Assembly (NCBI RefSeq): GCF_000400465.1
Contig: NW_008806281.1
Location: forward strand, 90,001-122,000
Length of the DNA: 32,000 nucleotides
Direction: 5' to 3'
From: Wallemia ichthyophaga EXF-994
Lineage: Eukaryota > Fungi > Basidiomycota
Of this stretch, positions 405 to 29,600 are shown piece after piece. The stretch's first letter is position 1, and each line of letters opens with the position of its first letter. The notes below the pieces were generated by a model. It had not been told where the DNA came from and made no database searches. It saw only the letters and a list, made by a program, of their open reading frames with translations. The translations under genes and the position numbers were made by a program.

Positions 405-3400
405 ATGAATAATAATGAAATTGGTAGATTGCTTCAACAACAACAACAGCAGCAATTTAATCAATTAAATCCACAACAGAGGCAGCAGGTGGGTTATTTG
501 TTATATTAATTTAATTGCTCTGATTAGTGGATTTCCTTATAGGCGATGATTGCAACTCAAATGAGTAGAATGCAGCAGCAGCAGCAGCCCCAAGGACAAC
601 CTCAACAAACACAAAATCATCCTCAGGACCTTAACCAATCACCTTCCCTTGAACAAGCATTTCAATCAAACAACCTCCACTTCCTAATCGACGCTGCAAA
701 ATTAAATAAATTAAATAACGATAACCTTCAAAGATTACAGAGGCTTATTAGAAATTCTCAACTTGAGCATATTCAACGGGGCGGTGGACAGGGTGCCGGT
801 GGTGGCCAGCAAGTTAGACAGCAACCACAGCAACAGCCACAACAACAACAACCTCAACAACCCCAGCAACACCCTCAGCAACCACCACAACATCCGCACC
901 TAGTCCCCTCCCAAATAGCTGCCGCTAAGAACCTCCAACAGAAAATAGAAACCATCGATTTACAATTGAGAAATTCAAATTTATCCCCACAAGACCGAGA
1001 TAACGCTAGAAAGTCTTATGATGAAGCTAAAAATTTACAAGCTTTGTTTATTCAACAGCTTAGGAGTAATCAATCGACTAAACAATCAACCAATATGTTA
1101 CACTCTCAATCTCAGCCACAAGTTACAACCAACTACGATAACAACTGGGCTAATCAACACCAATTTCCCAGTCTCTCAAATAACTTTTCCGGCGATCATC
1201 ACTCAAACATCCTTGGTCTTGGTTTGGTTGGTACTTCAAATCCTCCACAGCAGCAACAACCTCCACAACAACCTCCACAACAACCTACACCCACTCACCA
1301 ACCTCCCACTCAACCCCGCCCAAACCTCTCCATGCTCCCTCAACTTCAACCCGAAAATTTTCTCAAAGCCCTTATCGATCTCATGAAGAAGCGTGGCACT
1401 CCTATTGAAAAACTACCTGAAGTTGATGGTAAAGGTATTGATTTACACAAACTCTACATGACTGTCATCCAATCTGGTGGCAGCTTGGAAGTTCATCGTC
1501 AATCAAAGTGGCCACTAGTTGGTGCAATCATCGGTTTACCAATGTCTAATCAATTCTCAGACTCTAATCCACGTATCTCTAACAACTCCTCCCAAGCTTT
1601 AGCAAACGTTTACAGAGAATACCTCGCTCCATTTGAACAAGTGTGGATGAAAGCTATTCATGATCAAGTCTCACAGAGAAGAGCCGCTGTCATGCATCAA
1701 CAACAATCACAACAACCACAACAATCACCTCTAACTAGACCAATGACTGGTTTCCCTCAACCAATTCCTCAACAATTCCCTCAACAATCTCAACCCCCCC
1801 AACCCCAACCTAATCAACCTCAACCTAATCCACCTCAGCCTAATCAGCCCATCCATCAACAACAACTAATGGCTTCTCTCTCATCAATGTCTGATGATCA
1901 GTTGAGAAATTTAAACTTGACTCCTGAGCAAATTTTTCAGCTTCGCAGAAAGATCCAACAACCACAAATGTCTACCACTGCGCCGTCTTTGGATGCCACC
2001 AGCTCTGTTACTAACCCTTCTAACCCTCCTTCTATCCAAAGCAACCCTTCATCTCAAGGTATCCCTCCTCCTATTCAAAACAACCCTTCATCTCAAGGTA
2101 TTCCTCCTCCAATGGCTAACAATTTGCCAATCATGATGCCTCCAAAAGAGAGACTATCACAGGCCTCTCAACTTGTTCAGTCCATTAAGCAGAGTATCAT
2201 GCAACAAAGACCTCCTGTTAACTCTCAACCCAATTTGAATCCTGCTGAACAACACCAAATCGCACAAACTTGCGCTGAAATTAAGCCTATGCTTATCTCT
2301 TTAGAAACTATCCTGCCAATTTTCTTGTGTTTGAACGATCCAATAGAACCAGGTAAAATTGAAGCTGTTAAGAAGATTTCTTTGATGGTATGCTGGTTTT
2401 GTGATATTTACACTTACTAACTATCAATGCAGACTGTTATGTATTACCAGCAAACTCTTATGCTTCCCCAGCGTCAATTTTGTTTCAATCTCGAGGACAT
2501 GACCAGGCTGCGGATTCAATTGGCTCGATGTAAGCGTTGTTTCAATGTCTCATTTGTTTTGATTAACCATCATTGCAGGCTTCATGTATGTTAAGAATCA
2601 GGTCAAGGACGTACAAGGAATACAAAGCATAGCACAAAATGCAGCACCGAGACCTGCTTCCCAGCCTCAAGCAGCACCTTCTCAACCACCGGACCAGTCT
2701 GCCATTTTCAACAATGCCATGAAGCAAGCGCAACAGCAACCCTCGCACTCTGCATCTCCAGCACAACCTTCACAAGTTGATCAGGTGGCTATGTTCAATA
2801 ATGCGCTCAAGCAAGCCCAACAGCAGCAGCAACAACAGCAACAGCAGCAACAGCAGCAACAACAACAGTTACAACAACAACAGCAACACCACCACCAGCA
2901 GTCACAAGTACCCTCTCCAGCTTTGATGAGTGGCGTACAGAGAAGCACTGACAATCTCAAAGCACCACCGCCATCCAAGCGCACAAAGACTTCTCCGCAG
3001 ATACAAAATACACCTATAGATCTTTCACCATCACCCATTCCTCCACCCGCACATTCAGGCCAGACGCCACCGAAATCTCCGTATTCTCAAAAAGCAGCTG
3101 CAGCGAGTGCCAGAGCGAGTGGTGGTCGTGGACGCGGTAGGCCACAAGCAAGACCACGGAATGCACAAAGAGGTGCAAATGGTACGACAAGCAACGACAA
3201 CACCCCAATCTCCATCGATATTGATTCACCAGCGCAAAACGTTGCGCCGTCTCTACCAAAGGCACCTACACCTGCACCATCACAACCAACGCAGCCACCT
3301 AAACCTACGGCGCTTGAAGATCCAGTCGCCTATTTGGAGAATGCACTCGCAGATTTCAAGCACAACTTGCCATCTTCAGCACCCCAACCTCAGCATATAA

Positions 3401-3876
3401 GTAACCCACAGATGTTCAACAGCCTAGATGAAGGTCATCCACTCAAACCATCACTGACGCTCGAAGATGTCCACTCGAAACCTGAGCCTGAGTTTATACT
3501 CTCGCCAGATGACAACATCCATGGCCATCTCCCACCTAACGAGGAGCTCGACTTTAGTCTATTGATTGATGAATCTTCATTCAATGATCAGGATCAGGAG
3601 CAGGATGAGGAAAGTGGTGAGAATGTAAGCTCGAAGAAGATGAACGTCGAGACGCCTGAACTCATCAATGGAATGAACCCTTCGCCTGAATCGGTCAACG
3701 ATGAACTCAAGTCGCCCAAGGATGCGTCGGCTAGCGGAAGGCAAAAGACGTCAAATAGCCAAACTTCCAACGCTGCTCAAGAATGGCTCGCTGGATCTGC
3801 GACTGACCAGTATGACGCAATGATTGATAACAACTTTGGCGCTAATTGGCTTCTTCAAGATGAGCAAATTAGTTAG
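405..3876 (+). CDS. ARID/BRIGHT-domain, polyQ-rich putative transcriptional/chromatin regulator (4 exons: 405-488, 543-2387, 2433-2529, 2579-3876)
   Basis: ORFs 546-2420 and 2584-3876 join in frame through GT-AG introns 489-542, 2388-2432 and 2530-2578. ARID-like segment at about 1354-1646 (FLKALIDLMKKRGTP...IDLHKLYMTVIQSGG...W...LANVYREYLAPFE). Q/P-rich low-complexity flanks and an AT-hook-like GRGRGRP at about 3124-3144. Confidence 0.8.
2037..2114 (+). repeat. 39-bp tandem duplication in coding sequence (QSNPSSQGIPPPI / QNNPSSQGIPPPM)
   Basis: Two near-identical units starting at 2037 and 2076 (core caacccttcatctcaaggtat[c/t]cctcctcc). Confidence 0.85.
2818..2901 (+). repeat. CAA/CAG trinucleotide polyglutamine tract
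   Basis: Mixed caa/cag run encoding a Q tract of more than 20 residues, interrupted by one Leu and followed by HHHQQ. Confidence 0.9.
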
Positions 3877-4098
3877 CAATATCTGGTAACACAGATATGG
3901 ATCATGGTTTTTATTCTTTTCACTCATCTCTCTCCCTCGCTATTGACACTATTTTCCATATTTTCATCACACTGCTCATCTCCACTATTTCGTTATCCCA
4001 GTCAGCCATTGTATTATTAATTGTTTCCATATACATGTTTTAGCCGCGACTACTTTGCCTTAGTTAATGTTTATGACAGTAAAGTCTAATGTCGCACT

Positions 4099-5617
4099 TT
4101 ATTCGCCATGGAATTCAGATTGGACAGCACTAGCAAAATCATCATCGCACAGAACCCTGAAAGCCGTTAGTGCGACACCTGTAGCCGCCTCGAGTGTTTT
4201 TCGATGGGCGATGGGTGTATCGGTGCACCTTGCGAACTCTGCGGTATGATTAGAAACGCCTTCCTGTGAATAAATTTCGTAAGCAGGGTGCAGACCGGGC
4301 ATAGCGTAAGTGACAGCGCCGAAATCTGTTGATGCGCCTCCAGGGACGTCCAAAGCGAGCTGGACATGCGTACCAAATCTGCGCATCAATGCGGCTGCGT
4401 ATTCAACGGCTGCAGAGAGTGTGTGAGTAAGGACAATCCGCAAGTGATCAAACCACGTACGCACCGAGAAGCCCATTATGACGAAGTTCAGGGTGAGGAG
4501 GGGTGGTATCATGCAAGACGAATTGGCATCCGGTAGCATCAGCAGCAGCTCTTAAGCACGCAACTACCCTCCTCTTCAGTTCCACCAGCTCAGCCAGGGT
4601 CGCGCTGCGCACGCCATACCTGAGGCACGAGTACGCAGGGATAACATTGGGCGAGTAGCCCGCGGTGTCGATGACACCGTGCACGCGCTCATACGGCTTG
4701 GTCTGCTGACGGAGAGCGTTTATGTTGGTGTATGCGAGGATGGCAGCGTCGAGTGCGTTTATGCCCTCGTGCGGTGCAAGCGCTGCGTGTGCAGCCTTGC
4801 CCAAGTACTCTGCACTGAACGAATCGATTGCCAACATGGGCGATATTAGATCAGTTTTGTACGGCGCACCTCCACCCGGATGGATCATCAGCATCGCATC
4901 TGCGCTTTTGTATGCACCGTGTCTCAACATTCTTATTTTGCCACCGCCCCGCTCTTCCGCTGGTGTACCTAGGAGGAGCACCCTCCCGGATACATCCATC
5001 TCTGCCATCGCTGCAGCCACACCCAAAGCTGCCGCTAATGCTCCCTCAGCTATCAGATCTGCCTGTGTTAGGCGGAAGATTAGGGCGTGAAATATTCAGC
5101 TACCCACTGTGTCCACATGCATGCCCTATGCCCGGCAAAGCCTGCCTATTCAGCATAAACCCCGGAATGACATCATACTCACATCCATCTCAGCGTTGAA
5201 TCCCACTGTGCGTCCACCTATTCCACGACTAAATGTAGCCTTCCACGCCGTTTCCATCCCGCAGATTCCTCTCTCCACTCGCCATCCCCTGCCCTGCATA
5301 AAGTGGGTGAGCGTATTCGCCGCGTAATGCTCTCTGAATGCCAGTTCGGGATTTTGGTGGATCGTCGAACCAAGCTCTCTCAGTACACTCTCTTCCATGT
5401 GCAACGTTCTTTCTATTACCCCCGCTGCCCTGTCTGCCACTGGCTCGAAATTGGCACGATCATATGATGGCAGGGTGTTGGTGTGTGAATCGGTTGCATC
5501 TACTTCCAAATAGGTTGGAAGGCATGACTCTTGCTGCTCCTGCTCTTCACAATCCCTTTGCTCTGCATTCCCTGGCTCCTCCTTGAATTGTTTGCGTTTC
5601 GATAAGCAATTCCACAT
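4099..5617 (-). CDS. Peptidase M20 family amidohydrolase, PM20D2/ACY1L2-like (exons 5617-5183, 5141-5108, 5058-4465, 4409-4099)
   Basis: Spliced product restores the family motifs IHQNPELAFREH, GFNAEMD-ALPGIGHACGHNLIA, LLGTPAEERGGGK, MIHP, GGASTDFG and NHTAEF. Introns of 41, 49 and 55 nt are all GT-AG. Confidence 0.9.
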
Positions 5618-17720: not shown

Positions 17721-19835
17721 ATGTCCAGATTAGCTCCTCGATTGCCAATCCCTCCTTTAGAATCAAGCTTAGAAAAATATTTAAAATCTTTGGAACCTTT
17801 TATAGACGACGATAACCACGTCAGGTCTCATCTCCGCGCTATCGCTGACGATTTCAGAGATGGCCTTGGGAAGAAGTTACAGACGAGGCTTAAAGGTGAG
17901 AATTTCCAGCACACAAAATGTCATCTTATATTCCTCAAGACGTTGACAGAGTTTCCCCTACAAATTGGCTCGATGATCGTTGGTGGATTAAACTGGCCTA
18001 TCACACCAATAGGGCTCCCTTGCTCATAAACTCAAATTGGTGGCTCTTATACAAAGATGATCCATCCACCCCCAACGACCTCAAAATGACTAAAGATAGC
18101 CGTGGTTTCACAAATTGGCAGATTCTTAGAGCTGCGTGGCTGACGAGAGGATTGTTGCACATAAAACAGCTCCTCGACAAAGGCGAACAGCTCCCAGACT
18201 TATCTAAAGCTGGTCAGTGTCTTACTCTTCACTGTCTTTGTCTGACCAAGTCATTACAGCTCGATGGTTCGGTCCTCGTGCTAACAAGCTGTTTGGTATG
18301 ACACGCTTACCTCAGTACGACTGTGATCACTTGACACACGTACCCTTGCCCAATCTCACAAAGCACATTGTCGTGTTTGCTAAGAGTCAGGCGTTTAAGG
18401 TGGACGTAATAGATGCAGAAGGTGGTATATTTGGTTGGGATACCATTGCCAAGTCTTTCAGTGGTATTACAGAGAGTCTCAGCAACGATCTCGACTCACC
18501 TGTAGGTGTCATGACGGCGGTTGATAGGGATACATGGACTAGAGTGGGTGATATCGATCATGTCTCATAAATACCCGCTAAACCTTTAACAGAATCGTGA
18601 ACATCTCAAGATAATATCGCAAAAAAATGAGCTTACTTTGTCTGCTATCGAATCAGCACTGTTTACGGTCTGTTTAGACGATTACACTCTCCCTCCTCGC
18701 AGTAAGGAGCAGGACGTGTTAGATGGCCATATGATTAATATAGCTGGTGGAATAAACGGCAAAAATAGATGGTTTGACAAGTCAATGAGTCTTATTGTCG
18801 AAAATAATGGCAGAGCAGGTATGAACGGTGAACACTCATTCGTTGAAGCCCTGGTGCCATCGATAGTAGCTGATTATACGCTTTATGAAGATATGCCAGT
18901 GAATGCTTCAATTGCTTCTCAGCAACAATCTTGTCGCTCTGAAAGGCTTCGGTGGGTTTTAGATGATCACATTATCAGTGAAATCAAGAGTGCAAATTCA
19001 GTAGCTGAGCGTATACTGAATGATTCAGAGCCTTCAGAGTTACTTTTCAGCGAATTCGGTGTGGATTGGATGAAGGAAGTTGGTGAGGTTTCACTTGCTG
19101 TATTGGCATCTTCTCACGAAATCGAAAGCCGGTCTCGCGCCAGATGCGTTCATACAAATGGCGCTGCAATTAGCATGGTTCAAGAACCAAGGATACTTTA
19201 CAGCGACGTATGAGACTGCGTCCACTAGAATTTTCGATAATGGCAGGACAGATACGCTTCGAACTCTAACAAGCGAGTCGAAGCGCTTCGTAAAGACAAT
19301 GATGTCGAAAGATGTCAATGTGAGTAAATAATTGATCATCATCATTTTTCTCACTTAAACTTTATAGGATTCTGCCAAGTACGACAGCTTACTGCAAGCT
19401 ACAAAAACACATGCTAAGAATATGCGGGATGCAACCACCGGCAAGGCTTTTGATAGACACCTGCTGGGATTGAGGATGTTGCTGCGGCCTGGAGAAAGCC
19501 ATGAGTTGTTCGACAACAAGTATAATGCGATGAGCTCGGAATGGAAACTTAGCACAAGTGGACTAAGCGCTGGACCTCGTTTTAATGGAACTGGGTGCGT
19601 TTTTGTTAAGACTTTAACGTAACACTCATAGCGCTGCAGCTTTGGTACTGTCTATCCAGATGGATATGGTATTAATTACATGGCGGGGCCCTCCGAACTT
19701 AAATTTGGTATAGAAAGCAAATTACACTGCTCAGCGACGTCAACGTACGGATTCAAGCGTGATTTGCTTTCGTCTCTCCAAGAAATGCGACACGTTTGTG
19801 AAACACAGCAAAAAACCCTGAAAGCTAGATTATAG
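17721..19835 (+). CDS. Choline/carnitine O-acyltransferase family protein (introns 17896-17939, 18213-18259, 18544-18592, 19083-19128, 19320-19367, 19595-19639)
   Basis: PRLPIPPLESSLEKYL, NWLDDRWW, ESALFTVCLDD, NRWFDKS, GMNGEHS, PDAFIQMALQLA, TYETASTRIFDNGRTD, FDRHLLGL, LSTS and GFGTVYPDGYGINY. Confidence 0.92.
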
Positions 19836-20026
19836 AGTCTCTTATAAAGTATAGTGACCTACTTAAATACTGCTAATTTTTGTAAACTAGTATTCAACAT
19901 TGAATTTTTCGTATGAAGGATATCAAGACATGTTAGTGATATAAAAATAGAAGAGATGAAGACCCCATTTCATAAGTAAGACTTATCTGCCTTATTTAGT
20001 GGTAAATTTAGATAGTTAATTCAATA

Positions 20027-20580
20027 TTAATTCATCTTCAGATGTGCTTCTTCAGGTCTTTGTAACCTTCCACTGCGGGAGTATTCGATACACAGGTCGG
20101 AAAGTTTGAGGTTCGAGAATATTAATGCGTTCTTTTCTAAAAAGAGCATAAAATCATTTATAAAAGAGAAGTTGAATCTAAGTCGCAGAATCTTACTGTT
20201 TCCTCTCGACATTCTCGAAATTGACCATCTGTAAAGAGTTTCTTCGGTGGGCTCTTCAAATTTTGGATACTCTGAATTGGGAATCATGCGATGAAAAAAT
20301 CAGCGGTTTTGGGGCTTTACAACGCAAAGTGCCAGTGATTGTTGACGAAATAAGGCTGCCTTAGTGGCATACCAGTTAAGTGCGCGGAATTGTGAAGACT
20401 TGTATCAACAATTTCATGGGTTATTTCAGCCGCCAATGTCGCTATTTTTATGAAGGCACAGTGATCAAAGTCATGAATGGTATGAGGCACAAACAGGTGA
20501 TACTTTATTTTATCGGAATGTACCGGGAAAAGGAAAAGTAGAACAATTAAGTTATCCAAGTAGACAGAAAGCGTCTGCAT
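20027..20580 (-). CDS. Speculative 150-aa orphan protein (exons 20580-20373, 20271-20027)
   Basis: Two minus-strand ORFs join in frame via GTATG...TTCAG (101 nt, long for this genome). A competing plus-strand model exists. No homology recognised. Confidence 0.25.
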
Positions 20581-20687
20581 CACTGCTTCAAAGCCTCCAT
20601 CATGGCTACTAGATAGACAAAGAGAATTAAAAAACCTCGAAACGCACGCGAATGATGAAATGATAATGTAATCCACTAATACACCAA

Positions 20688-21548
20688 TTACTCTTCTTCC
20701 TCGCCGACCCTGTACGCAACAAGAGCTTCCACCTTGTGCACCGAGGTATCGAAAGAACGCAACCTGACTTGCTCCGTTTTATCTGATTGGATGAGATGTG
20801 GGTCTGCATCCACCCAGGAATCAGAAACTTGCATAGTCTTTGCTTCTTCGGTATCGGATGTATAGATGAGAATATTGAACGCACAAGGCTCATCGATCAT
20901 AGGAAGGAAAGTGACTGATGCTGTTATTTGACGAATGATGGCTTGTATTTCGCTGTGGATTTCTTTTTCTGTCTTTGGTTTGTTTTGTTTTTCGCTGTTT
21001 TGGCTGCTTTCACTATTTCTTTTGTCAGGAATAATATAATTCGCGCTTAAAAGCACCACTCACTCTGAGGCTGTGTTCTGTATGTCAAATTGCCATCTCT
21101 CTAACGTTTCCCTCGATTCCTTGCTCACAATCGCCAAAACTAATTTGCTTACTTGATTACCTAGGAGCCATTCACTCAATTGAGAAATAACTTTGCTGAT
21201 GTAAGTTTTCAATCCGTCATCGTTTGTTACTAGCATGTTTAATCCATACTTCTTCACCATCGAGAAGTCTTCTGGCTAGCAGTTGAGTTAGAATGGGCAG
21301 TGAGCGTACAATAGCCACACTAACAGGGTATACAGCTCTTTGGAATAATATACTTTCGCGTTTTGTTAGAATTTGACGCGTTAAATTGGTATACTATCTG
21401 CGCACCTGTTCACAGCATACTAAAAGCCCATTCAGCTAAATCCTATTTAACAGACTAGGAAACTTACACTGAAGAATTCTGTAACAATTTTAGTTGATCC
21501 CTTCAAATTTATCGTCGAACGCGTTGGTGCTGCTTGAGCTGTAGCCAT
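20688..21548 (-). CDS. MAD2: Spindle assembly checkpoint HORMA protein Mad2 (exons 21548-21468, 21419-21406, 21352-21325, 21275-21064, 21018-20688)
   Basis: [64 protein letters not shown] and VRLRSFDTSVHKV. Four GT-AG introns of 45-53 nt. Confidence 0.95.
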
Positions 21549-21580
21549 GGTGAGTGGTGGTGATAAAGAGAACAACGCGT
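21354..21580. promoter_or_regulatory. Cluster of MCB-like elements (ACGCGT x3, ACGCGAAA x1) around the MAD2/BET4 start
   Basis: ACGCGT at 21376-21381, 21519-21524 and 21575-21580; ACGCGAAA on the minus strand at 21361-21354. Confidence 0.4.
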
Positions 21581-22670
21581 CTAAGGAAAGCGATAGCACG
21601 GAATCAAAAGACAGCAAGCTGCTAAAGATTCAGATGACAATATAAGCAAGAGTATAGCCCACTATAGATGTGTAGAGGCTGGCGTTATGGACTTGGTGGG
21701 TAGGCGCATTTGCATAGCGCACGGCACATAGCAAACAGCAAACACTCACATAGAAGACTAGAGGAACCACGCAGTCAAGACAGCAGAGAGTTTAGATGCT
21801 GTGACGGAGTTGCTCAAAATCAATCCTGAATACTACACGATGTGGAATTATCGTCGTATTATATTATTAAACCTATTCACGGAAATCGGTGTGGATGCAA
21901 CGCAGGAGAAGCTTTCATTTGAGCTTATGTTTACTCTTGGTCTGCTGAAGGAGTTCCCGAAAGTCTACTGGATCTGGAATCACCGGACGTGGGCATTGGA
22001 GACGTTGTCGGCTACTTTCACAGACGAGCAAGCCGATGGGAGATTGTGGGAGTGGAATAATGAATTGAAGATGGTTGACAGTCTGCTGAAATTAGATTCA
22101 CGCAACTTCCATGCCTGGGGATACAGAAGACAGCTGCTCACTCTCATGAATTTCAAGGAAGATAGAAATACAGTCAGCACATTCCCACACGTACTCAGTC
22201 GAGATCAGCTCCTCAAAGAGAAACAGTCGACACTTCACTTCATCGAAAACAACTTCAGTAATTTCTCGGCATGGCATCAAAGAACGAAGATTTTGAGCCA
22301 ATTATGGGCGTTAGATGGAGGCGTTAGTATAGACGATCTCAATGAAGAGTTTGACTTAGTCAAACAGGCTATGTACACCGATCCATCGGATCAGTCGGTT
22401 TGGCTGTATCACAAGTGGTTGATACAACAGGTAGCTGATGAAAATATCGTAGATGTGCTACAAAGAGAGCTGGAGTCTATTAACGAGCTTTATGAGCTTG
22501 AGCCTGAGTCGAAGTGGTGCTTAGAATCTCTCGCTCACTACAACAAACTACTTCATCAACATACTCAAGCGAACGAGCTGCTCCGTAGATACAATGAATA
22601 CCTTACTGAACTCATCACAATTGATCCAGACAGAAAAAATAGATATCTAGACTCCCTTGTAAAGCTGTAA
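21547..22670 (+). CDS. BET4: Rab geranylgeranyltransferase (type II) alpha subunit (exons 21547-21549, 21597-21695, 21762-22670)
   Basis: ATG|GTGAGT...GATAG|CACGGAATCAAAAGA gives the family-typical MHGIKR start. PPTA repeats: NPEYYTMWNYRR, FPKVYWIWNHR, DSRNFHAWGYRR, NFSNFSAWHQR and TDPSDQSVWLYH. Confidence 0.93.
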
Positions 22671-24264: not shown

Positions 24265-26479
24265 TTACATGGATTCTAACTTCTTTATCATTGCTTCCAT
24301 ATCATTCTTAAGCTGCTTCAAATGCGCTACTTCTTTATCAAGATCTGCATCATTGATTGAGCCTGACTTGACGTCACGGATCCGATCACCCTGAGCTAAG
24401 ATACTATCATTCAATACCTTTGCTTCTGGTGTATCTGGCACTTTCACTACCTCCTTGGCTGCTTTCGCTGCTTTTGCTTGCTTGGCCAGCTGCTTTTTCG
24501 ACAATTCTGGTTTTGGCTCCTCGCTTTGCATACCACCAAACTTCTTTCTCCAGACGTCTTCCATCTTCTCATCTATACGAGTGAATAGAATGCTTGGTGT
24601 TCCAATTCTGTGTCCTGGGTAAAGATCTATGGCGAATGTTTCTGGTAGAGTGCGTGGTGGTGCGTTCAATTGATTTATGATTGATTCTGAGGTTGATGGC
24701 ATGAATGGGTGCACAGCTGCGCTAAGTATGTAGATGAGATTAATAGCTACCAGTATTGTTCTCTGAGCTCTACGTGGGTGCTCAGCTTATCGCTTTGTTA
24801 GTTTTTAGGGTCTTTCTCACTCTAATCGACTCACCCAAAAGCGCATTGTCGAGCTTGTTCTCTTGTATCCACTCATTACCACGTCTGGACAGTGCAAGGA
24901 CATCCTCCAAGCCAGATCGCAGATGTGCGCGCTCCATAGAGTCAATGTATCTTTTCAGAATCTCATTGATATCCTTAACGAAGCTATTTTTACGTGCCAT
25001 GAATTCGGAATCATCTGAAAAGATGAGATTAGTGTCTTGAGCTTCACCAGGCACAAGACTGTCGAATTTGGCAGCGGTGAACTTGAGAACCTAGACTTCA
25101 CGTTAGCTTTGAGAAGTAAGACAAAATATAACTCACTCTATTGACAAAGTTTCCGAAATTCTTGAGTAAGTTGTTGTTGTTCGCACTGACAAAGTCACTC
25201 CATGTGAACTCAGTGTCACCAGATTCGGGACGACGACTGAGTAAGAAGTATCTCCATACGGATGGTGACAAGCCTGTTTCCTTAGCACTGTTACCAAATA
25301 CACCAACACCCTTTGATTTACTGAACTTTCCACCTTCATATTGGAGATAGTCTGTCGATGAAATGTACTTGAGTCTAGTCCAGTCACGTCCATCTGCTAA
25401 CAACAAGGAAGGGAAGAAACACAAATGGAAATATACGTTATCCTTGCCCATAAATTGGTATAAGTTGACGTTCTTTGGATTTAACCACCATTTCTGCCAC
25501 TGATCGGTGTAATTTGCAGTGATGGAGATATAACCAATTGGAGCATCCATCCAGACATACATGACCTTTCCAGCCATTTCAGCGTCTTCCTCAGCATCTC
25601 CTACGGCTGGTACAGGGACGCCCCACTTAAGATCACGAGTGATTGCAGAAGGTTGAAGACCAGCTTTCATTCTAGCCTCGACAATCTCTCTATCTGAGTT
25701 GATGATAATGTTTGCAGGCCAGTTGTATTGCTTTGCAGTGTCTTTCAACCAACCTTCTAATGATGGCTGCAATTTACCCAAATCCAGGTACATATGAGCA
25801 GTTGGACGAGTTACGAGCTGTGAATTTGGATTCATTTTAGACCTTGGGGATTGTAATTCGAGTGGACTATCAAAAGTACGCGAACACTTGTCACATTGAT
25901 CACCACGAGCGTCGTCTGCTTGACAGTATGGACAAGTACCTTCAACGAATCTATCAGCCAAGAATTTGTCTTCTTCGACGGAATAGATTTGTTCCCTGGT
26001 AGACTTGACAAGGAGATTGTTGCTTCTAATGTTCTTGTAGAAGTCTTGAACAATCTCCGTTTGCTTATCTGTGGAAGTGCGCCCAAATTTATCAAACTCA
26101 ATTTCAAACCAATCGTAGACCTGCTTGTGGATGGCTGTGAACTTGTCACACAATTCCTTCGGAGTGATGCCATCTTCGATAGCCTTCGTCTCTGTTGCCG
26201 TACCGTACTCGTCAGTACCACAAACGTAGAGAGTGTTGCGATTTCTAACTCTGTTAAATCTAGCAAATACGTCTGCGCTGAGTGTACTGCCAATCACATT
26301 TCCCAAGTGCGGTACATTGTTGCAGTCTGAGGTGCTTGTGAGCTGTTGATGGGTATGCCAGCAACCAACCCACAAGGCAGTGCAGATGTGATGAGCACAT
26401 TTTCCCTGTCATCCTCTGGAAGTATAACTTTGTCCTTTTCGACTAATTTCCTCTCCACTTGCTCGTTATACGTCGTCAT
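24265..26479 (-). CDS. MES1: Cytosolic methionyl-tRNA synthetase (exons 26479-26374, 26326-25137, 25090-24835, 24785-24265)
   Basis: [17 protein letters not shown] (HIGH), [10 protein letters not shown], Zn knuckle CPYC...[28 protein letters not shown] (KMSKS-like) and HPFMP. C-terminal WHEP-like helix pair. Confidence 0.97.
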
Positions 26480-26641
26480 AGTTTGAAATGAAGAAAGAAG
26501 ACAGGCTATTTACCGACAAATCTCGTCAAGCTACCAATGTATATCTTTTAAAAGCCACCGCTATTAATCAACACTATTAACATCTGCTGTAAATCTAAAT
26601 TCCCATCTCATCTCTGCACCACCACCACTGAATTCCAGGAT

Positions 26642-29600
26642 ATGGGTGTAAAGGGTCTCTGGCAGCTGCTTCAGCCAGTCGCTAGGCCTGTAAAGTGTGT
26701 AGATCTTGCCATCATCTCCATCTCCCGCTAATTAGATCACCAGACTTGAAATGCTGGGCGGCAAGAGAGTCGCGATAGATTCTTCCATCTGGCTCTACCA
26801 CTTTCTTCGAGCTATCAAGGATAAGCAAGGCCACACCCTCACCAATGCCCACATTCTCGGTTTCCTGAGGCGTATACTCAAAATCCTGTTTTATGGCCTC
26901 AAGCCTGTATTTGTATTCGACGGTGGCGCGCCTAAGCTCAAGAAATCTACCATTGTCAGTTTCGCCTACAAGAACAGCGTGACACCTTATTGACTTACTC
27001 CCAGTCTGAGCGCAAGAACAGACGAGAGGGTGCACGCCAGAGCCACGCATTGATAGCGTCTAAGCTTCTTTCCGCACAGCTGCGCAAGGCAGCTATACAG
27101 CAACAACAGAAGGCGTGAGTCGCGCTTACATTTTAAATGACATCATTACAAACATCACTAACATCACTAATCAGTGAAAAGCGTCCTTCTAAAAGTGGTA
27201 TAGACAACGACGACGCAGATGGAGATGGGAATATAGCTTATCTCGATGATCTCAATAACACAGCTTCACCAGCAAAAAAAGAGCAGAAAGCAGCAACGCA
27301 GAAAAAAAGGCGTCTAGATCCCTACGAATTACCAGCAGCACCTCAGCGTCCCAAGTCCAGCATACCCGATCCGCGTCTAGCTACTGAAGATGAGCTGCGT
27401 GATTTCATATCGACAATGAAACCATCAGATTTCGACACCACTTCCGATGCATTCAAACAGCTTCCTCCGGAAGTGCAGTACGAGCTGATTGGTGATATGA
27501 GATTGAAGTCGAGAAGCACATCTTTCTCTCGCTTAGAGAATATGTTACGAAAATCGTCGACAGCTATCGATTTCTCTAGAGCTCAGATTAATAATTTGAT
27601 GCAAAGGAACGATCTCACTCAAAAACTCATCAACCACTCCGAAGGTATGGGTAAAGAAGAAGACGCGCCGGTTGCTTTACGCGTTTCTACTTCGCGGAAT
27701 AGAGAGTATGTCCTCATGCGTAAGTCTGACAATGAAGGTGGTGGATGGGTGCTCGGTATACAAGACAAGCGAGGTGAAAAAGGTCAGAAACCGATTGAGA
27801 TATCGAGTGATCATGAGAATGAATATGAAAATGATGAAATGCACGTTTCAGAAGACACAGATGAGGATGATTTTGACATGGAGGAGGTGAACATACCTCC
27901 AGCTGTGGTAACAGATATTCCAGTGGTGGAAGATAGACCATCTTCAACGCCACAGCCACCGCAACTTGGATTCGAAGAGAATGAAGCGCAGTCTACCGGT
28001 CTCGATGCTGCTTTAGATGAGAGTATGGTAACCAAAGCCAAAGAAGATAGCTTGAGACTGCTGAAGGAATCTACACGCAGACATCAAGAAAAGGAAAATG
28101 CTACTGAGAGTCTTGACAAGCAGCTGGATTCCATCAAGCATGTGAGGGGTACTGGGAGTGTGGAAGCGTCTAAAAAAGTGGATCATACACCGCCCGATGT
28201 TAGACAAACCATTGTAAAGCCTCCAGTCAAAGCCACATCTGAACGGAAGATGATACCAAAGTATGTACCAGCTAAACCACGAGGAGAGAAGAAGCGGAAT
28301 GTCACGCTGCAAGACTTTCATGCTAAGCAGCCGCAGCAGCTTCCTCAGGAGACACCCCCACCTGACAAAGATATTCCGTTGTTCCCTGACGAAAGTGAGG
28401 AGGAAGAGGCACAGGAACAGGAGCAGAAGGAAAAGGAATCTATGAGCAGCGATGCTGATATGGAGGCGGTTTACTCGAAAGAGAAAGACGAAGTCAAGGA
28501 AAAAACTGAAAATGTTCGTGAGCAGAAGCAGGAGCCGTCAGGGATGATACCAGAGAAACCAAGTAGTCCAATTACAGTGAAGGAGGAAAAGGTCGAGCCA
28601 CTACCTCAGCCTTACGATGTGACGGAGAAGGAAGAGTCAATTGAAGCTTCAGGCGCAGTACCAGCGCAGCCTGATACTGGAGGTGTAGGATTAGACTCAG
28701 ATTCCGAAAGCGCTTATAGCGGCTGGGAGCCAACACCTTCACCCGAAGCATCCACTTCTGCTGAGCAGGCAGTTGAGCATGAAATAGAGCAAGCAGTTGC
28801 ATATGCCGCTGAACAAACCACGGAGCAGCCAAAAATGCAACCCGATGGTGCGCGAGAAATGTCACCACCAATCGACATTGACGCCTCCGATAATGAAATG
28901 GAAGCGCAAGAAGCGATAGAGAATGAAGAAAAGGACTATATAGCATTCAGTAGCAAAGCGAATAACAAAAATTATGATGAGATGCTTGATGAAGCAGACA
29001 AGGATATTCGACGTTTACAGCAGAGTGCGAAGAAAATGTCGGGTGGTAGTGACGACCCTACAGTTCAGATGACTGGCGAAATACAGAAAATGCTCAAAGC
29101 TTTCGGTATTCCTTATATAACAGCTCCAATGGAAGCTGAGGCGCAATGTGCGAAACTCGCCCAACTAAATCTAGTAGATGCAGTTATAACAGATGACAGT
29201 GATATCTTTCTGTTCGGTGCGCCCATCGTATACAAGAATATGTTCAACGATAAGCAGTTTGTGGAGTGCTACGTGTTGGGCGATCTGGAGAAAGACCTGT
29301 CTTTGTCTCGCGATAGACTTATTGAACTGGCATATATCCTTGGATCAGATTATACAAATGGCTTCAGTGGTGTGGGACCAGTCATGGCCATGGAACTATT
29401 GGGTGATTTTGCTCACGAGTCCCCCAACACGCTCACTGGATTCAAGAATTGGTGGACAAAGGTTCAGAATGGCAAGGATACTCAACAGGATACGAGTACG
29501 AAATTTAGAAAGACATTTAAAAAGAAGAATAAGAATTTGCTTCTCGATAAGGAGTTCCCGGATTCTGGTGTCAGAGCTGCTTACTACGGTGCACAGGCTG

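Follow-up and report, generated by a model that had tools for sequence, protein, structure and literature searches.

Start-codon introns form a described class in fungi, animals and plants: they are phase 0 introns that lie between codons 1 and 2, and they are over-represented in genes for short proteins rich in lysine, ribosomal proteins among them (Nielsen and Wernersson 2006, PMC1626468). In Saccharomyces cerevisiae, the first coding exon of BET4 is listed as 'AUG', with a length of 3 (PMC3226532 Table 2). Here we report on a 32,000-nucleotide stretch of the Wallemia ichthyophaga EXF-994 genome (contig NW_008806281.1, positions 90,001 to 122,000; hereafter the window, with positions counted from its first letter). 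Over the 401 nt compared (21400-21800), the window is identical to scaffold KE007231.1 of this strain. Here BET4, the predicted gene for the alpha subunit of Rab geranylgeranyltransferase (RabGGTase), appears to begin with a coding exon of a single codon, and that codon overlaps the start codon of the spindle-checkpoint gene MAD2 on the other strand.

How does this locus compare with the systems described to date? With the start-codon intron class it has in common a phase 0 intron right after the ATG; it differs in that the intron additionally sits where the leader of the neighboring gene must be. The S. cerevisiae pair of BET4 (YJL031C) and MAD2 (YJL030W) is likewise divergent, and its BET4 likewise consists of an AUG-only exon, an intron and then HGIKR. 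It departs from the Wallemia arrangement in having 218 bp between the start codons (locus L035, read directly) and an 87-nt intron, as opposed to −2 or 0 bp and 46–47 nt; moreover, yeast MAD2 has no introns, whereas the Wallemia gene has four. The prenyltransferase alpha subunit was reportedly first published as 'Mad2p' (Jiang et al., 1993, is said to be the source), owing to the adjacency of BET4 and MAD2.

Head-to-head pairs and bidirectional promoters of compact eukaryotic genomes also have facing 5' ends and spacers far below 1 kb. Where such pairs overlap, the overlap is usually confined to untranslated regions; in W. ichthyophaga, the initiation codons themselves have two bases in common. 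In the annotation of W. mellicola CBS 633.66, the two gene ranges already meet and BET4 begins MHGIKR, but the start codons abut rather than overlap. Literature on head-to-head overlapping genes in fungi and on BET4/MAD2 adjacency yielded nothing specific. Start-codon introns, the AUG-only exon of yeast BET4, head-to-head overlaps and the meeting gene ranges of W. mellicola are already known, and the MAD2–BET4 overlap is an extreme case of known kinds, not a new kind of element.

The MAD2–BET4 junction and its gene models

The initial annotation had placed both start codons in one palindrome, and every coordinate that it gave proved exact on re-reading: CCATGG occupies 21545-21550, CAT 21546-21548 and ATG 21547-21549, followed by a splice donor and a 47-nt intron. 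The negative intergenic distance that it claimed is likewise borne out, as the start codons overlap by 2 nt. The 5' ends of the two genes, which occupy opposite strands, face each other, and at −2 nt the spacer is far within the 1 kb that defines a head-to-head pair. CATG is the sole geometry that lets two ATGs on opposite strands overlap. As judged from the sequence, MAD2 (minus strand) and BET4 (plus strand) are thus confirmed as a real head-to-head pair whose start codons have two bases of CATG in common.

The BET4 donor, GTGAGT, comprises 21550-21555, the intron ends in GATAG at 21596, and the codons CAC GGA ATC AAA AGA (HGIKR) begin at 21597. Because an in-frame TAG immediately precedes the CAC, HGIKR can be reached from an initiator only by splicing. 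Without splicing, reading from the ATG at 21547 runs out of frame and stops after 32 codons; upstream, a TGA lies in frame four codons before this ATG. Between 20000 and 21600, only two sites have the form ATG/GT (the slash denotes a possible splice site): the BET4 start and one at 20477, past the 3' end of MAD2. The BET4 donor GGTGAG reads CTCACC on the opposite strand, where it immediately precedes the MAD2 ATG; a dozen or so base pairs would thus hold two start codons, one 5' splice site and one initiation context.

Several comparisons bear on the one-codon exon. Full-length BET4 orthologues from non-Wallemia basidiomycetes begin with MHG (11 of 12) or MHN (the remaining one), with basic residues next, and W. 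ichthyophaga BET4 has the conserved N-terminus MHG[IV][KR]R only under the spliced model, M/HGIKR. A start-codon intron is recognized by an ATG with a GT donor directly behind it and by an AG acceptor from which the frame resumes at a conserved second residue; BET4 displays each of these. The modeled protein of 336 aa has the length of the W. mellicola CBS 633.66 reference protein (XP_006955746.1; P0134), which starts MHGIKRQNVAKD (MHGIKR) and whose DNA reads ATG/GTGGGT, a 46-nt intron and TAG/CACGGGATTAAAAGA. Indeed, the pattern of ATG/GTRRGT, an intron of 46–47 nt and a CACGG acceptor recurs at eight further Wallemia loci spread over at least three lineages. One of these (L002) comes from a Logan assembly of a Wallemia sp. 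that is a close relative of W. ichthyophaga, five are from W. mellicola (L001, L005 and L030-L032), and two are slightly divergent but W. mellicola-like (L033 and L034). Across four Wallemia lineages the intron measures 47, 47, 46 and 46 nt, never a multiple of 3, and read-through meets stops in every lineage compared.

Downstream of the intron, exon 2 evolves as translated sequence, since its differences from W. mellicola concentrate at third codon positions (9, 6 and 23 at positions 1, 2 and 3, respectively). Met32, the initiator in the public W. ichthyophaga models, is replaced by Leu in L002 and in the W. mellicola-like genomes. The one-codon exon and 47-nt intron that the initial annotation had invoked to recover MHGIKR therefore agree with the orthologous N-termini, with the other Wallemia loci and with the introns of distant fungi described below. 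From these data, we regard the ATG-only exon 1 as supported, with the W. ichthyophaga splice junction deduced by comparison.

Both gene names also hold. The BET4 protein contains PPTA repeats (Pfam PF01239) in five stretches (E = 3.8e-38; 127 bits, with the cutoff at 29.5), and its similarity to solved structures is far stronger for RabGGTase alpha (E = 1e-38) than for farnesyltransferase alpha (E = 5e-10); its database neighbors are named Rab geranylgeranyltransferase. It is, by these similarities, the RabGGTase alpha subunit, with predicted enzyme activity in combination with a beta subunit (BET2). The product of the minus-strand gene carries a HORMA domain (PF02301, E = 1.8e-23) and matches Schizosaccharomyces pombe Mad2 (E = 7e-57) and human MAD2A (2e-47) much better than MAD2B/Rev7 (about 3e-6); on this evidence the gene is MAD2, not MAD2B/Rev7.

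For the start of MAD2 at CAT 21546-21548, several lines agree with the initial annotation. This is the first ATG past a stop: upstream of it the frame has a stop and no ATG, and exon 1 offers no second one. The public EXF-994 model spans 20688-21548. Solved Mad2 structures, those of S. pombe and human included, begin to align close to their N-terminal ends, at residues 6-12 of our 221-aa model. The 27 residues encoded by exon 1 are 100% identical to those of W. mellicola. A second small exon follows, flanked by introns of 48 and 53 nt; it is conserved in a three-species alignment representing three Wallemia lineages, and it restores a stretch that matches S. pombe Mad2. A 230-aa model of MAD2 was discarded: it carried a nine-residue insert relative to solved Mad2 structures, and alignment revealed the micro-exon, giving 221 aa and five exons. 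The public models have 219 and 218 aa, and they may place the splice sites of the micro-exon differently.

As a further check on both models, identity to W. mellicola was computed per modeled segment over 21000-21950. Exons ranged from 0.62 to 0.91 and introns from 0.27 to 0.55, so that every exon exceeded every intron, a pattern that supports both gene models. The features of the locus are collected in Table 1.

Table 1. Modeled features of the MAD2–BET4 locus, in window coordinates.
Feature	Position	Strand	Basis or remark
CCATGG palindrome holding both start codons; A21547 and T21548 common to both	21545..21550		Read directly
MAD2 start codon, context caccATGg	21546..21548	-	First ATG past in-frame stop
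BET4 exon 1, coding part (ATG only)	21547..21549	+	GTGAGT donor directly 3'; orthologues MHG[IV][KR]R
BET4 intron 1, 47 nt, phase 0, GTGAGT...TCTAAG...TAG	21550..21596	+	Comparison across lineages
GATAAAGA block in BET4 intron 1 (TCTTTATC on MAD2 strand)	21562..21569		Identical in all Wallemia lineages
BET4 exon 2 (HGIKRQQAAKDSDDNISKSIAHYRCVEAGVMDL)	21597..21695	+	99 nt in all lineages, then GTGGGT or GTGAGT donor
BET4 intron 2, 66 nt, phase 0	21696..21761	+	Frame restored into RNHAVKTAESLD...NPEYYTMWNYRR
BET4 exon 3, stop codon included	21762..22670	+	Whole protein 336 aa
MAD2 exon 1, 27 residues	21468..21548	-	Most conserved segment of the locus
MAD2 micro-exon, 14 nt, TATGCTGTGAACAG (YAVN and 2 nt of Ser)	21406..21419	-	Conserved island between diverged introns
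MAD2 exon 3	21325..21352	-	Five-exon model, conservation profile
MAD2 exon 4	21064..21275	-	Five-exon model, conservation profile
MAD2 exon 5, stop codon included	20688..21018	-	3' end as in public model; protein 221 aa

Age of the intron and history of the gene pair

The start-codon intron of BET4 extends well beyond Wallemia. In Cryptococcus neoformans, the gene reads ATG/GTAAGG, a 62-nt intron and then CACGGAATCAAGCGA; in Coprinopsis cinerea, ATG/GTAAAG, a 57-nt intron and then CATGGGATAAAACGG; and in S. cerevisiae, as read directly at L035, ATG/GTATGT, the 87-nt intron and then CATGGCATTAAAAGG. Because Cryptococcus, Coprinopsis and S. cerevisiae have this intron position in common, it is ancient and, by this distribution, at least as old as the split of Ascomycota and Basidiomycota. 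The intron is absent from the BET4 orthologues of Malassezia and Tilletiaria.

The overlap of the start codons occurs in fewer lineages. W. ichthyophaga and L002 have CCATGG with its 2-nt overlap (L002 shows CCATGGTGAGT), and all W. mellicola-like genomes have CCATATGG (the loci read CCATATGGTGGGT), in which CAT and ATG abut with a spacer of 0 nt. A 2-bp AT indel distinguishes the two states. Conservation of the common CATG in related genomes, which the initial annotation had named as a check, is thus seen in L002, with abutting codons in its place in the W. mellicola-like genomes. The layout as a whole is unlikely to be due to chance, because it has been kept in the eight other Wallemia loci, and in at least three lineages, despite divergence of the intron sequence. 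In the W. mellicola reference (L005), the annotated ranges of MAD2 (2157-3001, minus strand) and BET4 (3001-4099, plus strand) have one base in common, and the MAD2 ATG occupies 3000-2998 although the gene range runs to 3001; the extra base might be a 1-nt untranslated region or a coordinate convention.

The adjacency of the two genes, for which the initial annotation had looked to synteny, is likewise upheld in part: it is found throughout the Wallemia loci and in S. cerevisiae, and it is lacking in five other sampled fungi. Since the pair is absent from these five, common ancestry of the yeast and Wallemia pairs is not established. Within Wallemia, an older divergent spacer between MAD2 and BET4 would most likely have shrunk during genome compaction. 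The halophilic basidiomycete W. ichthyophaga has a genome of 9.6 Mb, of which 73.6% is coding, with a mean intron length of 61 bp (PMC3849046).

The surroundings of the pair offer some further observations. A carnitine acyltransferase gene lies beside or near BET4 in Wallemia, Malassezia and Tilletiaria (L028, L029 and 17721-22670 of the window), which suggests an old BET4/carnitine acyltransferase neighborhood in Basidiomycota; in Wallemia, MAD2 sits between the two. In the window, an unannotated gap of 850 nt (19836-20687) separates the carnitine acyltransferase gene from the 3' end of MAD2. On the minus strand, this gap shows translated similarity to L002 (47–56% identity), and it has no counterpart in W. 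mellicola, where the spacing is 27 nt. The gap may hold a small gene specific to this lineage, or the remains of a gene.

Putative embedded leaders and promoters, and competing readings

How could two genes tolerate such a junction? The start-codon intron would make the overlap tolerable, as exon 1 contributes only the initiator Met and the intron follows at once; because nothing else is encoded there, the overlap costs BET4 nothing. The 47 nt of intron 1, free of coding constraint, would coincide with the leader of MAD2. Because a eukaryotic mRNA needs a 5' leader, the two transcription units would overlap at their 5' ends, with each core promoter embedded in the partner gene. BET4 transcription would then begin within MAD2, on the strand opposite exon 1 or opposite the intron-rich 5' portion, where the first 270 nt of that gene hold three short introns. 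Conversely, MAD2 transcription would begin within BET4, either in intron 1 or deeper in the gene. The putative BET4 leader would occupy the strand opposite MAD2 exon 1, and the putative leader and core promoter of MAD2 the strand opposite BET4 intron 1. We infer the positions of the leaders, their antisense overlap and the reciprocal embedding of the promoters from these gene structures. The arrangement would be a tolerated result of compaction for two housekeeping genes of low expression, not a dedicated regulatory device. This reading, which combines the structure with partner-embedded promoters as a tolerated end-point of genome compaction, is in our judgment quite probable.

The conservation profile contains traces that could reflect such embedded elements. 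MAD2 exon 1 is 0.91 identical to both relatives, the highest value in the locus, despite the usual variability of the Mad2 N-terminal tail; by comparison, the adjoining BET4 intron 1 is at 0.55 to W. mellicola, and BET4 intron 2 is the least conserved segment of all (0.27). Among codons that keep the same amino acid, synonymous change relative to W. mellicola affects 7 of 27 in MAD2 exon 1 and 230 of 409 in the rest of both genes (p = 0.0025 in one post hoc Fisher test). These figures hint at extra constraint on MAD2 exon 1 at the nucleotide level, as expected of a BET4 leader or promoter. In all four lineages, the 147 nt or more that precede the BET4 start codon contain no ATG, which is a further hint of such constraint. 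The GATAAAGA block, 14-21 nt upstream of the MAD2 ATG, is retained while the remainder of BET4 intron 1 has diverged; it resembles a GATA-factor site and is a candidate for such a site; alternatively, it could belong to the leader or initiator of MAD2.

Might these traces instead mark a device maintained by selection? On this account, the obligatory antisense overlap of the 5' ends couples the expression of MAD2 and BET4, or makes it mutually exclusive, and thereby explains why the arrangement persists across Wallemia. Polymerase collision, promoter occlusion or double-stranded RNA would be speculative routes to such coupling, and selection would have acted perhaps since the ancestor common to Saccharomyces. 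In its favor, at least three Wallemia lineages, near saturation at synonymous sites, have retained a spacer of 0 nt or less, MAD2 exon 1 is unusually conserved in its nucleotides, the GATAAAGA block is retained in BET4 intron 1, and the pair is also divergent in S. cerevisiae. However, the five fungi in which the genes are not adjacent indicate that coupling is dispensable, and short divergent spacers are usual in this genome (30–162 nt in a methionyl-tRNA synthetase/XPG-family pair, for example). Furthermore, once promoters sit in coding sequence, separation of the genes is hard, and persistence needs no selective advantage. We thus consider a selected device unlikely. A more specific version takes MAD2 exon 1 (as BET4 promoter and leader) and BET4 intron 1 with GATAAAGA (as MAD2 promoter and leader) to be one maintained bidirectional control region that couples low expression, the pair being perhaps a remnant from before the divergence of Ascomycota and Basidiomycota; we judge it improbable to a like degree.

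A number of observations weigh against tolerated compaction with embedded promoters, or against the gene models beneath it. The adjacency is not general: BET4 is not beside MAD2 in C. neoformans, C. cinerea, Malassezia or Tilletiaria, and MAD2 is not beside BET4 in Aspergillus niger. When the closer relative is used for comparison, the deficit of synonymous change in MAD2 exon 1 does not reach significance (6 of 26 compared with 140 of 431), and it could reflect general constraint on 5' coding ends. An exact look-up of the spliced 336-aa BET4 protein in a collection of 15 billion proteins gave no match. When the spliced junction ATGCACGGRATYAAAAGACAR was sought in metagenome contigs, 20 loci were returned that had no similarity to BET4 beyond the pattern; these are chance matches. 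Finally, all public W. ichthyophaga annotations start BET4 at the ATG at 21687, giving 305 aa that begin MDLRNH (P0001, P0121 and P0122), and assembly GCA_004917865.1 models MAD2 as a 258-aa protein from 20688-21709 (L003 3002-4023), across the BET4 start.

The BET4 annotations amount to a different reading of the locus, in which BET4 starts at 21687 (Met32), HGIKR is untranslated and the true coding spacer is 138 nt. The initial annotation had itself raised a downstream start, and the unanimity of the public models speaks for one; over their common part, the spliced model and the public protein are 100% identical. However, Met32 is not conserved as a methionine even in L002, and the 31 codons upstream of it are constant in length and vary mainly at third positions, as coding sequence does. 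In addition, non-Wallemia full-length orthologues all begin MHG or MHN, the W. mellicola reference model already has the ATG-only exon, and three distant fungi carry the same start-codon intron. A start at 21687 is thus very improbable, and by this comparison the public 305-aa protein is truncated by 31 residues in every strain annotation examined.

The last alternative, that HGIKR is joined to the ATG of another upstream exon or that MAD2 starts elsewhere, so that the starts used in vivo do not overlap, could draw on the second ATG/GT at 20477 and on the 258-aa MAD2 model reaching 21709, but we give it hardly any credence: use of the 20477 site implies a 1.1-kb intron across the whole of MAD2, where the genomic mean is 61 bp, and its region has no W. 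mellicola counterpart, as the carnitine acyltransferase gene there ends 27 nt from MAD2; the 258-aa extension is antisense to conserved BET4 coding sequence; and both the fit of solved Mad2 N-termini to the 221-aa model and the stop-bearing, ATG-free frame upstream of its ATG argue against another MAD2 start. The ATG at 20477 was accordingly rejected as a BET4 exon. We regard the 258-aa extension, which runs antisense to BET4 exon 2 and lacks a counterpart in other Mad2 proteins, as an artefact.

Other features of the window and implications

BET4 models also vary within W. mellicola. In many strains (L001 4001-4052; P0002, for example) the protein is given as 343 aa beginning MVGLNDKE-HGIKR; these models translate the beginning of the start-codon intron and invoke a 25-nt 'intron' after it, and the 336-aa reference model is correct. 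The seven-residue insert is almost certainly a gene-prediction artefact, a 25-nt intron being impossible.

Elsewhere in the window, a second tight divergent pair occupies 24265-26642 (L003/L004 6579-8956), with a methionyl-tRNA synthetase gene on the minus strand and an XPG-family nuclease gene on the plus strand. Their annotated starts are 30 nt apart in one annotation and 162 nt in the other. The segment 546-3876 has a strong negative GC skew, to −0.41, over two long Gln/Pro-rich open reading frames of 624 and 430 aa that probably belong to a single gene interrupted by an intron. CAA/CAG repeats (2818-2900) and a 39-nt tandem repeat (2024-2110) fall within these frames, and their central part holds what we take to be a candidate ARID-type DNA-binding region.

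For annotation, the locus calls for three corrections: a truncated BET4 in W. ichthyophaga, a seven-residue insert in W. mellicola BET4 models and one over-long MAD2. It also contains, in the 14-nt exon of MAD2, an element that is easily overlooked in annotation. For the biology of these compact genomes, the locus indicates that a start-codon intron can permit the complete loss of an intergenic spacer. The pair would thus be a natural test bed for RNA polymerase II promoters that lie wholly inside a neighbor's exons and introns.

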